The position numbers and the translations under genes were made by a program. The notes below the pieces were generated by a model. The model worked only from the letters and a program-made list of their open reading frames with translations. It ran no database searches and had not been told where the DNA came from. This document shows positions 29,201 through 32,260 of a DNA stretch of 64,000 bases, piece after piece. How positions within the stretch are numbered: the first letter of the stretch is position 1; each line of letters opens with the position of its first letter. The stretch is taken from the NCBI RefSeq assembly GCF_035594765.1, contig NW_026943824.1, positions 8,016,317 through 8,080,316 on the forward strand, given 5' to 3'. The DNA is from Anolis carolinensis. Its lineage: Eukaryota.

Positions 29201-30336
29201 TTTGAGGGAGGCTCCTCATGTTTGTTTCTGGAAATGCATAACTGCCCCCATGCAGCTCCCAGACTTGCTGTCCCTTCCCATTTGACACTTGATAATTTGT
29301 CCCTGGCATGTGCTCAGAGGGAAAGGGGTGTGAAGGAGGATGGCCAAACATTGCCTGGTCTGGGCCATAGTGTTTTCAAGGCACCCCGAAATGTTGTCAG
29401 TTAAGGTATGATGGGCCTGTATGTGTGTGCAATGCTTCTTCAGGGCCCATAGGGTGGGAAAGGGACCATGCTCCCCGGCTGCTGCCCTGCCTTTGGAACC
29501 TGGGCTGGTTCTGAACATGAAGGGGGACCTTCCTAGCAAAAGGAGTTGGAGGCCCTCCACCGCTTTGGGGTGTCGTTCTGCACAGAGGGGACTTTCATTG
29601 CCTTGAAGTAGCAGATCCTGGGCATTTCCTTAACAAAGTGATCCCAATGCGGATCCATTAAGGGCTAGGGAACTTTCCATGAGACAGAATAAAATGGAGG
29701 AGGGGGAAATGGACAGACAAGCAGAGAAGGGGCCCAGGGTCACTCTTACATCCCTTGGGTTTCTGCCCACCTCAGAGGCGCCGATGGAGCGCCGTGTGAA
29801 ATGGCAGACGCCTCCAGAGGCTGGGTGGGTTGAAGCCCACAACAGCTCAGACCAAAACAAGCCTGCCTAGGTTACCTGCTTGCCTCCCCTTTTATTCATG
29901 GCCCAGGGCCCATGGCAGAGGAGGGGGCCACTGTGCTGCCCAGGGCCCTCCCTGTTCTGCTTGGAGAAGCCCCTCTGCACTATCCTTCCTTCCTTGCAGC
30001 CTCCAAGGACTGCAGAGTCCAGGTGGCTTGATCAGGCCCAGGGGAGCCAAGGACAGACAGTTTGTGGCCTGAGGCTCTTTCCTGCCCTGAGTCCGGTTGG
30101 AGGTGGGCCTTGTTTGTTCTCTTTTTCCAGGCTGGAAGAGGAGGAGGAGAGGGAGGAGGCTGGGGGCGAGAGGGGGCCAGGGGGCCTCTGGGGCCATTCC
30201 TCCAAGAGTAAGTCCCCCTCTGCCACTCTCTCGCCCATTCGCTTTCTCTCGCATGGCGCTTCTCCTGGGCTCAGTCCTTGGAGAGCAGGCTCTCTGTACT
30301 CCTGGCATTGGCTGCTGGCATCCTGGCCTCTGGTGA
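17253..30336 (+). CDS. GSG1L: Germ cell-specific gene 1-like protein (claudin-fold AMPA receptor auxiliary subunit), mammal-like short form, about 343 aa. Exons 17253-17661, 27868-27915, 28082-28234, 28606-28717, 28822-28992, 30131-30207, 30275-30336
   Basis: Motifs [73 protein letters not shown] and [28 protein letters not shown], with consistent splice phases. The last two exons are less certain (67-nt intron). Confidence 0.9.
17705..17908. mobile_element. Near-perfect palindromic MITE (hAT-like), about 200 bp
   Basis: ATCAGGCCTGGGCCAACTT...GCTTAAGC...AAGTTGGCCCAGGCCTGAT. Partial copies at about 15047-15146, 25845-25925, 49673-53149 and 53660-53792. Confidence 0.85.
18714..19683 (-). repeat. 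3' LTR of the Gypsy element
   Basis: Direct repeat of 24164-25133 (offset 5450). The ORF-track translations of the two copies are identical. Confidence 0.97.
19389..23063 (-). CDS. pol: Pol polyprotein: aspartic protease, RT, RNase H, integrase, chromodomain. The frame is open upstream into the gag overlap, implying expression by -1 frameshift
   Basis: [10 protein letters not shown] (protease), YLDDFL (RT), [11 protein letters not shown] (RNase H), H..GH..C..C and ADFIT/TDRG/E (integrase), GPY motif, [21 protein letters not shown] (chromodomain). Confidence 0.97.
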   Translation of the reverse strand: MVTLWSAKRGPVMIHAMIDSGATNNFIDREYADSLGLQYHDFKNARVVQAIDGRPLKTGPVSQWSEPTRMWIREHMEEISFFVTEVPHFPVILGIPWLTLHDPNISWSNRELQFASPYCQNHCLVAKVCHATDTEPIITLPKKYSEYWDVFNEKEAEKLPPHRPYDCAIDLVEGAPIPRGHLYSLTEPEQEALREFLETNLRKGFIRPSQSPAASPVMFVKKKSGELRLVVDYRALNNITKRNSYPLPLISDLLDRLRGAKVYTKLDLRGAYNLVRIREGDEWKTAFQTKFGLFESRVMNFGLCGAPATFQHFVNDIFQDYLDRFLIIYLDDFLVFSRSQSEHENHVKMVLQRLRDHGLYAKLEKCAFDLQEVDFLGYRISPLGLSMDPAKVSAVLEWRAPTNKKEVQRFLGFANYYRKFIPDFARWSDPITSCIRGKQPFRWTDQAEKGFQQLKKLFTSQPILQHPNPGTPFVVQADASDVAIGAVLLQPVGDHLHPCAFYSRQLTTPERNYTIWEKELLAIKAAFETWRHWLEGAKFPIEVHTDHRNLEHLRTARKLNQRQQRWALFFERFNFQIHYVTPAQTKQADALSRKPEYAAGRKETFESQLLQPENFATLTVGNTKSIPIGSTSPTPGPICAQEIRASQQADAWAQDQLRQGLHFPFSLKDGLLCYRNHVYIPPGPGREKALRLCHDCKPAGHFGLFKTMHLILRDFWWPKIRKDVEKYVNTCPVCQRSKIRREKPSGLLHPLPTPSRPWEIISADFITDLPPSCGFTTILVVVDLFTKLAHFIPCEGLPTAKETADLFLQHVFRLHGLPKSLVTDRGSQFTSRFWKALQKLLGIDSRLSSAHHPQTDGQTERTNATLEQYLRCYVNYQQDNWASLLPLSEFAYNNGVQASTKETPFFANYGFHPRFFPPVIETSEVPAAEDWLQELTAVQQLLLQQLDQAKEDYKRHADKHRQPGPEIKVGDRVFLSTRFLPSHRPCRKLDARFIGPYPVVAQLNPVTFKLQLPRSMRIHPVFHRSLLLPADGVRPDTDQPAPPPVLMNGEEEFEVEDILDSRFHRRRLQYLIDWVGFGPEERSWEDASTVHAPDLTRRFHQTYPTKPRPRASGRGPQFGRGLEEGDSVMTHGPCSPAQDIVIPDEDENLGFLPSQSELDSSQPDISQADLGTLHLQESCLPEVCQTSPEPTSPVFLRREFCKQQRSLDSASRRSARIAAKNVAN
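23129..24121 (-). CDS. gag: Gag (capsid plus CCHC zinc knuckle), 330 aa
   Basis: Sushi/PEG10-like capsid motifs LPTKFTG and [10 protein letters not shown], and the knuckle [14 protein letters not shown]. Confidence 0.95.
   Translation of the reverse strand: MSTGVVPGPSGQPITYTIDKEEVDRIRDKLNAQDGEIRGLKERGVRLPAMALPTKFTGEASKVHVFRRQCQAYLEARAAEFPQEDIKVAWVYSLLDGPAASWATALFDQASPHLRSAQHFLDHLKETWGIEDNLEAAGHKLRRLFQGDRPMSQYIAEFRVLAHNTGWNDVALRGQFREGLNIEMLEEISKVDPPQTLEALIDQCLRAEVMIANRKQWVRGQGSRAGAKPPAPASVQPRPVWRPPPPTPYPRGGEEVPMQLGNVRPRLDAAEKARRQRLNLCWYCGNGGHFARECPAKGKPAARLAAASSTETKASEPTGTQPAGEANDRV
24164..25133 (-). repeat. 5' LTR of the Gypsy element
   Basis: Lies immediately upstream of the PBS and gag on the minus strand, with TATA-like TATTTAG at 24737-24731. 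Confidence 0.97.
27260..27535. mobile_element. Sauria SINE (boundaries approximate)
   Basis: Matches the other SINE copies and ends in aaacctttacct. Confidence 0.7.
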
Positions 30337-30917
30337 GGGGAGCTGCGTGGAGCTGTGGTTGAACTGGGGGGTCTCCGTGCCTGCCTGCCCCGATGCCTGA
30401 CTGGGGGGGAGGAGGGAGTTTCCAAATCTGCCCCATGGGCTCTGCATCATTGCCTCCTGCATGCTCTGTGTTACTATGGGTCAAGGCTGACCAGGTGCTT
30501 GCCCTCCCGCCTTCTGCTGCCTCTCTGGGGGAACAATTTTGGAGGTAGGGATTGTCAGTGAAATTAGGTCCATTGGCCTGATGGTTTTGCATGATTGCTT
30601 TGTGAGCTGCATGAAAGGCATGGGGAGCATTAGCACCCACATCTTTGGTTGCTTTCTTTGAGGTGGGGAGGGCATGGGGTCCTTGCCACCTGAGGAATGT
30701 CTTGTTGCGCATGCAAAGGAGTCTCTCCACTGTAAGTTTGACTATGTGGAACTAGAGAGATCCCGCCAGAGGAAGGGAAGACCTGACCTGGCTGGAGATC
30801 TCTCTCTCCCTCCCTCCCTCCCTCTCTTTTAATGGCTATTATCCCTTTGGGGAAAGGGCTCATCCTGCCCTTAAAGAGGATCCTGACAGCCCCTTCCCGC
30901 ATTGTGTTCTCTTGAAG

Positions 30918-32260
30918 GAATGCGCACCACCCAGCTGTGACCCTGCAGAGCAATGCCAGTGGCCGAGGGCTCCCCCCAGCCCTTTCTGGGGGCTCCTCCA
31001 CCAACACAGCGGCCTCCTCCGCCCCCTCCTCCCCTTCAATGCCCTCTGAGCCCAGCAGCCAGCCCTCCTCCTCCTCCTCTTCACCAGAAGTAGCCGTTTC
31101 CCCAGGAGCCCCGAACACGACTGCCAAGGAGCCCAGAGTCACAGCCCCTCTGCACCCAGGGATGGCGAGACCCGTACTCCAGGCAGTCGCTCCCCACAGA
31201 CCCCAGCTGGCCTTCCAGGCTGCCACCCTTCCCAGTCACGGTGGCCATGGCTCAGGGGCCCTTCCTAAATGCCCCAGAGGCACTCCCCACCTGGAAGGAT
31301 CTGCCAAGAGGACAGAGAAGCACCTGGAACTGAGGACAGAAGAGGGAGACCTGAAGAGGTAAGAAAGGGGCAGGGGCAGGGAAGGCCTCTCTGTTAAAGG
31401 CCAACTGTGACCGCATTGGAAAAGAGGAGGCAGGGAGGGGGTGCAGCCTGTGCTTGAGGGCCTTTCCTGCCTCTGGCCAAAGTGGGTCTGAATCTCTCCT
31501 GTTAGCAGCCCAGTGCCCCTTCAGGCAAAGTTTATAGCCCTGGATTGCCCTCTCCTCACTGGTAGGTGAATGGGTTGGGATAAGGAAAAGGATTGGGGGG
31601 CCTCTCCCTCTTCAATGGTAGCTGTTCACCGACAAGACCTACTGAGCCATTAATGGAAGCAGTGGTAGGCCCTGACTCTGTGGGTGATATTGGGGTAAGA
31701 GGTGGTGATGCTTCACCTCCCCTGGGCCCCTTCCAATGTTAGCTAAGGAACAGTGTAGTGATAGAAGCCCCTGCTCTGGTCAAGGCAATGCAGAGGGTAA
31801 AGAGTCCCTCTCCCCCCCGCCCCCACCAACCTGCCTTCTTTCCCCCAAAAGGGGCCTTGTGACCCGGAAAGAGTTCCTGGCGGTGGAGCAGGAGCTGGCG
31901 GAGGTGCGAGAGGAGCTGCGGTGCCTGCGCTGGAAAGTGCGCCATGTCGGGGAGGCAGGCCAGCTGCAACCGCAGCAACCACAGGCACCCTGTTTGGAGG
32001 AAAGCAAGCGCTACAACGGCCACACGCTGCGGGAGCTGAGGGCCATGGTCCGGTCAGAGGGGGACCCCCATAGGGCCGCCCACAAAGTCCTCCTGGCCCT
32101 ATTCAGCGACGCCTGCCTGCGTCAGACGCCCCATAACCAGCACTGGAGCCCCAACACCCGGCCTAGCCCCCGGCCTGACCCAGGGGAACTCTATGCGGTC
32201 TACTGCCACCTGCTCCGGAGCGCCTTCTCCAGCCCCAAAGAGAGGGCCCAGTCTTTCTAG
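30918..32260 (+). CDS. Two putative extra GSG1L coding exons (30918-31358, 31852-32260): Ser/Pro-rich linker, coiled coil and BEN-domain-like segment
   Basis: Good acceptors and donor (tcttgaag|, ag|gtaaga, cttctttcccccaaaag|), phase 2 at every junction and open frames throughout. The joined CDS is 1878 nt (625 aa). Confidence 0.6.

Follow-up and report, generated by a model that had tools for sequence, protein, structure and literature searches.

The window analysed here, a 64,000-nucleotide (nt) stretch of the Anolis carolinensis genome (contig NW_026943824.1 of assembly GCF_035594765.1), is free of N and carries, in this order, ADCY9, a lone alpha-globin gene, GSG1L on the plus strand and KATNIP on the minus strand, the neighbours being named via their translations. 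GSG1L damps AMPA-receptor signalling. To our knowledge, everything known on GSG1L comes from rodents. The subject of this work is the 3′ part of the gene, where a single cassette exon of sauropsids probably chooses between two C-terminal tails, a short one ending in -TQL and a long one composed of a linker, a coiled coil and a BEN domain. We know of no such GSG1L tail in mammals.

The exons of the window match database proteins labelled Anolis carolinensis GSG1L, on which precomputed annotation places the four-pass core of GSG-1/claudin type (PF00822 and PF07803). Coding exon 1 (17253–17661, plus strand like all GSG1L features below) lies in a CpG-rich promoter region and begins with the ATG at 17253, a start that agrees with the Anolis proteins P0055 and P0056. 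It is followed by exon 2 (27868–27915, 48 nt), which has AG/GT ends and agrees with P0055, exon 3 (28082–28234, 153 nt), exon 4 (28606–28717, 112 nt) and exon 5 (28822–28992), which encodes the last membrane helix and the juxtamembrane tail. Coding exons 1–5 sum to 893 nt, and exon 5 therefore ends in phase 2. The phase-2 donors of GSG1L are those of exons 4 and 5, and both join position 30918 in frame. Exon 6 (30131–30207, 77 nt), present in the RefSeq model X4, is the switch exon; it is entered in phase 2 and left in phase 1. Exon 7 (30918–31358) is the dual-frame exon, and exon 8 (31852–32260, 135 codons plus stop) is the last coding exon of the long isoform.

With exon 6 kept, exon 7 stops after seven codons (...SSK-RMRTTQL-stop), giving a protein of 330 amino acids. 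The terminal Thr-Gln-Leu-stop occupies 30929–30940 (stop codon at 30938–30940) and forms a class I PDZ-type motif. With exon 5 spliced straight to 30918, a long frame is opened that runs through exon 7 as a 146-codon linker rich in Ser, Pro and Thr and remains open through exon 8, where it encodes a coiled coil of about four heptads (31865–31948) and the core of a BEN-like domain (32006–32227). This protein has 580 amino acids. Protein lengths are sums of exon lengths here, also for the 625 and 343 amino acids discussed below; the exons were searched singly and not as a joined model.

Both readings of exon 7 are conserved. Nine genomic loci were compared (Anolis, two skink-like, one gecko-like, green turtle and four birds), amounting to about five independent lineages; the lineage labels of contigs were inferred from cluster membership and similarity. 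In the short frame, T-Q-L-stop falls at the identical seventh codon in 9/9 loci, and the C-terminal S/T-x-hydrophobic pattern of class I PDZ ligands is thus found as T-Q-L in all nine, as well as in the transcript contig L038. Although bases 13, 16 and 19 of exon 7 fall on third codon positions of the long frame, they are invariant, and base 22 is G or A only, as is needed for T-Q-L-stop; splicing signals could add to this pattern. The long frame has no stop in any of the nine loci, against 1–14 stops in the other two frames. The length of exon 7 ranges from 441 to 606 nt and is a multiple of three in 9/9 loci, with a phase-2 donor. Shuffled exon 7 sequences stay open by chance at frequencies of 0.04 down to <0.0002 per locus. 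The orthologs of exon 6 measure 65 and 68 nt versus 77 nt in Anolis, always 3n+2, and encode a recognisable peptide across lizards and birds. Inclusion versus skipping of exon 30131–30207 is probably the conserved switch.

The constant 3n+2 length of exon 6, together with the position of the short stop 418 nt ahead of the last junction, would also suit a mere poison exon whose inclusion sends the mRNA to decay; the functional protein would then be the long form, and constraint on its frame would have produced TQL-stop as a by-product. A by-product would leave unexplained that the exon 6 peptide is recognisable across lizards and birds, and that there is no variation at positions which the long frame leaves free and which T, Q and L require. 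The form containing exon 6 is moreover what two RNA contigs assembled. This explanation is judged improbable.

These two spliced contigs, L003 (skink-like) and L038 (gecko-like), join exons 5, 6, 7 and 8, so that skink and gecko mRNA splice exon 6 directly onto exon 7. The encoded protein ends in NTQL-stop, and the long frame is intact downstream of that stop. The exon 7–8 junction is seen in both and in the bird contig L024, which starts exactly at base 1 of exon 7; this suggests more than one upstream partner, without telling which. Eighteen sequencing runs share words with the locus, none of them recorded as RNA; as the shares (0.76–0.96) cannot separate spliced from unspliced sequence, they were left unused. 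Models joining exons 5, 7 and 8 occur in at least 11 lizard species (in RefSeq, in UniRef and in the annotations of two GenBank assemblies). The short TQL form corresponds to X4 of Anolis and X3 of Pogona in RefSeq, and both forms are annotated in these two lizards. The GSG1L gene models are thus already public, both isoforms being in RefSeq, and are unremarked there. The exon 8 acceptor is tandem, with a spacing of three bases, in birds, turtle, Pogona, Sceloporus and Podarcis, and the database isoforms X1 and X2 differ by one residue at this site. In an older Zootoca model (P0051, 882 amino acids), the linker/coiled-coil/BEN part is present twice. The newer P0044 has a single copy, and the doubling is therefore judged to be probably an assembly duplication. 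In the green turtle assembly, the first 200 nt or so of exon 8 are duplicated head to tail and the frame is broken (L027:9770–10396); since the hawksbill protein P0091 is intact, this is probably an assembly error.

The original prediction had described four segments (30131–30207, 30275–30332, 30918–31358 and 31852–32260) as open, with AG/GT ends and compatible phases, and this proved accurate (2>1, 1>2, 2>2 and 2>stop). Its protein lengths of 625 amino acids and, with read-through at 30332, of 343 amino acids are arithmetically correct, as is the in-frame join of exon 5 to 30918 (580 amino acids). It is through this last join that the proposed long isoform, in which GSG1L continues into a Ser/Pro linker, a coiled coil and a BEN-like end, is supported. 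The switch had been placed elsewhere, in a 58-nt exon at 30275–30332 whose TGGTGA sequence (30331–30336) would act as a splice donor or as a Trp-stop, toggling between a mammal-like end of 343 amino acids (...GCWHPGLW-stop) and the 625-amino-acid fusion. That segment is indeed AG/GT-bounded, open and phase-compatible; by chance alone, some 0.1–0.25 open pseudo-exons with this phase are expected per kb nearby. The upstream intron would be only 67 nt long, and the acceptor is the weakest in the gene, with the lowest pyrimidine content. No ortholog was found: skink-like and bird intron 6 contain neither a DNA match nor a counterpart of the CW..W-stop peptide. None of the retrieved Anolis models uses the segment, and the skink and gecko mRNAs pass from exon 6 to exon 7 without it. 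It is probably no real exon, and a toggle at this place is very improbable. The conserved short end is ...TQL-stop at 30929–30940, which the prediction had overlooked.

The long frame of exon 7 has no Met common to all loci, and two of them (L001 and L026) have none at all; it is therefore entered by splicing from a phase-2 donor. Re-initiation as a general route was discarded on the same ground. Ribosomal frameshifting was also considered, the long frame being −1 relative to the short one, and was rejected: no slippery heptamer occurs in the first 25 bases. The skip junction itself is deduced from gene models and frame logic.

Fusion models would be artefactual if the exon 7–8 frame belonged to a separate soluble coiled-coil/BEN protein with its own promoter or a downstream Met for re-initiation on the short-form mRNA. 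Several bird and turtle annotations list such a separate gene, with a Met start in exon 7 or 8, and both informative spliced contigs hold the long frame behind a stop. A coiled coil plus a BEN domain is also the usual layout of soluble BEN-solo proteins. The start codons do not agree with this proposal. Besides the lack of a common Met in exon 7, the Met of exon 8 in birds is Val in Anolis, skinks and lacertids, and conservation of the open frame starts at base 2 of exon 7, which is 50 codons ahead of the bird Met. The stretch from exon 5 to exon 8 lacks a CpG island, and bird, turtle and lizard were found to share no conserved block within the introns. The tail thus appears not to be a soluble product of its own gene as in the BEN-solo factors: it has no common start codon, and it is spliced to GSG1L exons in L003 and L038. 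A separate protein is accordingly considered unlikely, and the two-tail reading is retained.

The coiled coil preceding the BEN-like domain is clear, as had been claimed. In Anolis, its a and d positions are hydrophobic in 8/8 cases, and AlphaFold builds residues 5–32 of the exon 8 peptide as a helix with a predicted local distance difference test (pLDDT) score of about 80–88. The nearest PDB sequences to this peptide are designed coiled coils, with weak E-values.

The homology to BEN domains is seen in the orthologs. That of Limosa matches Pfam BEN (PF10523) with 24.9 bits (E 2.4e-5) versus a cut-off of 23.2, and UniRef names this fragment 'BEN domain-containing protein'. Ten or more other orthologs score 14–23 bits, below 23.2, with Nyctibius at 22.9. 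The match usually ends at position 54–61 of the 76 of the Pfam model. Among predicted models, the Atlas model of the Nyctibius tail superimposes on a chordate BEN cluster with a template modelling (TM) score of 0.74 over 121 residues, and our AlphaFold model on a BEN cluster with a TM score of 0.50 (two such models, mean pLDDT 70–71). Language-model features rank BEN clusters top for the Anolis peptide (0.87–0.89), which is taken as a lead. A divergent BEN domain is thereby predicted in exon 8, supported through the orthologs. There is no sequence match to any solved BEN structure, and the domain is therefore no close paralog of the BEN-solo proteins. In the gecko-like locus (L026:760–1279), the KRYN motif and part of a core BEN helix are lost and a long acidic end is gained; both exon 7 frames are nonetheless retained.

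Several results weigh against a spliced membrane–BEN fusion. The Anolis exon 8 peptide has no Pfam BEN match, and Pfam and PDB sequence searches with it returned coiled-coil noise only. BEND3 ranked first among structural matches but weakly (Foldseek E about 1, VIA Z 5.2), and a wide VIA search gave generic helical matches, with no BEN entry among the top 50. The predicted BEN-like end is in this respect supported through the orthologs. No read or contig with exon 5 joined directly to exon 7 was seen, the skip junction resting on gene models, and gene predictors favour long frames. Exon 6 is included in both informative spliced contigs, and the long form could accordingly be a minor one. Models from birds and turtles disagree, attaching the tail by other joins or listing a separate gene.

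Descriptions of BEN domains come from regulators of chromatin and from proteins of viruses. They occur in chromatin and DNA-binding proteins (PMC11514455, PMC8887127), and the DNA-binding ones read bases via basic residues of the C-terminal helix, residues that BEND3-BD1 lacks; the latter binds a protein instead (PMC8887127). In GSG1L, the tail after the FP turn, which forms the last helix, is shortened to 10 residues in Anolis and counts 15–19 in most lizards and 24 in birds and turtles. Its K+R content is about equal to D+E, only turtles being more basic (5–6 K/R). With this exception, the long basic recognition helix that ends DNA-binding BEN domains of types I and II is absent. As the last helix is short and not basic, DNA binding by the domain appears unlikely from the sequence, and a nuclear role, implied when the tail was called a nuclear-type module, appears doubtful.

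It has to be considered in this light whether the long isoform could be a membrane-tethered nuclear factor, the linker being cut and the coiled-coil/BEN piece signalling from synapse to nucleus. The company that BEN domains keep in chromatin and DNA-binding proteins (PMC11514455, PMC8887127) would suit this, as would the long disordered linker between module and membrane and the more basic last helix of turtles. The helix that would read bases is however near neutral and is shortened in most lizards, the Pfam match usually stops before the end of the domain, and the aligned linkers show no evident cleavage site that is conserved. Little probability is given to this possibility. The same holds for a combined scheme, in which the long tail released from the AMPA-receptor subunit would act on chromatin and the short, decay-limited form would anchor receptors via its PDZ ligand; it is thought improbable too.

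Purifying selection acts on the tail. Among birds, turtle and skinks, the pairwise ratio of non-synonymous to synonymous substitution rates (dN/dS) of exon 8 is 0.09–0.28. It reaches up to 0.56–0.74 in pairs that include the gecko-like locus or Anolis; dS may also be lowered there by a high GC content. For the linker in exon 7, most pairwise values are 0.4–0.7. The anole stem branch is long (0.71), and A. carolinensis and A. sagrei share 96% identity in exon 8 and 86% in the linker. The BEN-like domain of anoles was thus remodelled and is conserved now, not decaying. It had been proposed that the final BEN helix was missing and the domain possibly in decay. The helix is indeed shortened; decay does not fit with the identity between the two Anolis species and a dN/dS well below 1. 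The expected conservation of the reading frames in other reptiles and in birds was borne out, by both frames in 9/9 loci and by the exon 8 ratios. In birds (L005, L009, L018 and L028), the divergence of exon 7 is roughly a quarter of that of the intron after it (0.04–0.06 versus 0.18–0.23). Its synonymous rate of about 0.08 is below the intron rate, which hints at a constraint at the RNA level in exon 7, and that of exon 8 (0.32–0.43) is above.

All matches to the exon 8 tail belonged to lizards, turtles or birds. Snakes, crocodilians, mammals, amphibians and fish did not appear among their labels; the searches were length- and word-limited, so that absence is unproven. One of them used a Phrynocephalus protein with words and scoring restricted to residues 478–616. 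The ends of mammalian, frog and fish GSG1L were taken from Supplementary Fig. 4 of PMC7653359, where the frog and fish proteins terminate in ...DQC/EQC, resembling the core of the ...QCWVLGHWV end of mammals. These ends and the lack of matches outside sauropsids make it more likely that sauropsids gained the tail than that mammals lost it, and thus disfavour the ancestral tail lost in mammals that the original prediction had envisaged. A leftover ancestral ...QC-stop last exon was looked for in introns 5–7 and in the bird and turtle introns, and nothing convincing was found. The source of the module could not be traced, with no relative found outside sauropsids and a mostly unresolved tree of 17 peptides. 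BEN frames have been linked with transposons. Capture from a BEN frame of transposon type is a plausible candidate origin.

Homology to BEN domains, purifying selection, the exon 7–8 junction, the mRNA of the short form and the conservation of both frames are shown by the data. The following mechanism is proposed as probable for sauropsid GSG1L. Keeping exon 6 would yield a short auxiliary subunit of AMPA receptors with four membrane passes and a -TQL end, which would bind PDZ scaffolds of the PSD-95 type, judging from its pattern. Skipping exon 6 would shift exon 7 into the other frame and add a disordered Ser/Pro linker, a coiled coil and a divergent BEN domain. This long tail would remain cytoplasmic on the membrane protein and self-associate through the coiled coil, the BEN domain possibly serving to bind proteins, as BEND3-BD1 does, and not DNA. 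The long tail may thereby alter the clustering or traffic of GSG1L-containing receptors. A stop well before a spliced junction is a standard signal for nonsense-mediated decay. Since a spliced intron junction lies 418 nt downstream of the short stop, the short mRNA may be limited by this decay, as that of Arc is. Premature polyadenylation could protect the short form from decay, but no site for it was found in either exon 7 or intron 7 of the four lizard loci; AATAAA or ATTAAA hexamers are present in bird and turtle. Most likely, the ancestor of sauropsids acquired the module by capturing a coiled-coil-plus-BEN reading frame that lay downstream.

Like its mammalian ortholog, sauropsid GSG1L has the PF00822/PF07803 core and is convergent with KATNIP. 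Both sauropsid isoforms retain the juxtamembrane tail, presumably that of exon 5, which matters for the function of rodent GSG1L (PMC4778064). Binding and modulation of AMPA receptors have been shown for the rodent protein (PMC4778064, PMC10603098). Unlike the mammalian proteins ending in ...QCWVLGHWV, those of sauropsids end in -TQL or in a linker/coiled-coil/BEN tail of 280–345 amino acids; Supplementary Fig. 4 of PMC7653359 includes no sauropsid GSG1L. The T-Q-L of the short isoform fits the class I pattern that anchors the TARPs (transmembrane regulatory proteins of AMPA receptors) gamma-2 and gamma-8, also members of the CACNG-GSG1 family (PMC7653359). In TARPs the motif is constitutive, whereas GSG1L acquires it through a frame shift and loses it when the exon is skipped.

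BEN-solo proteins have one BEN domain preceded by a coiled coil. The long tail resembles BEND5, BEND6, BANP and Drosophila Insensitive in this order of elements and in the profile and predicted-structure similarity of its orthologs, but its module sits on a four-pass membrane protein and its last helix is shortened and not basic. It also resembles the 'type 0' domain BEND3-BD1, which binds PICH and has a BEN fold without a basic C-terminal channel (PMC8887127). The BEND3-BD1 structure 5JNO is among the weak Foldseek rows; unlike the GSG1L domain, it is part of a nuclear multi-BEN protein. A splice choice giving two tails and an mRNA with a junction downstream of the stop is shared with Robo3.1/3.2 and Arc, and nonsense-mediated decay limits the output of Arc and Robo3.2 (PMC8339359). 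Robo3.2 arises by intron retention and Arc has non-coding exons in its 3′ untranslated region; in GSG1L, by contrast, the 'untranslated region' is the conserved coding tail of the other isoform.

In the literature, no report was found of a BEN domain on a membrane protein, nor of a BEN tail or this splice switch in GSG1L. Known parts, a cassette-exon frame switch and a domain fusion, are combined here in a new way. If the switch is real, reptiles and birds can alter receptor anchoring or clustering in a way that mammals lack, by a mechanism kept since before the lizard–bird split. Exon 7 would then be a clear example from nature of coding in two frames, and the BEN domain seems to have lost DNA reading.

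Further in-frame forms are annotated in Anolis. Exon 4 is joined to exon 7 (28717>30918) in RefSeq X2, with 523 amino acids; exon 5 is joined to exon 8 (28992>31852) in a form of 433 amino acids; and exon 3 is skipped (27915>28606) in one of 529 amino acids. The 523- and 529-amino-acid forms would lose membrane helices (the last one in the former) and could put the tail on the membrane's other side.

Downstream of exon 8, AATACA at 32356–32361 probably serves as a variant poly(A) signal; in other lizard loci, AATAAA is found 91–158 nt past the stop. The stop codon of KATNIP, on the minus strand, is at 33886–33888, and its AATAAA is at about 33495, so that KATNIP does not overlap exon 8. The label KATNIP is backed by PF14652 in an orthologous contig. 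GSG1L and KATNIP are arranged tail to tail in the window, and KATNIP likewise adjoins in L001, L002 and L026; we take this arrangement to be that of mammals as well.

Intron 1 of GSG1L contains a long terminal repeat retrotransposon of Gypsy type (18713–25133, minus strand). Its two 971-nt repeats have zero mismatches, a GAATC target-site-like duplication is present, and its open frames comprise 1163 and 342 codons; the element is very young. The lone alpha-globin gene between ADCY9 and GSG1L (14204–15358) is intact.

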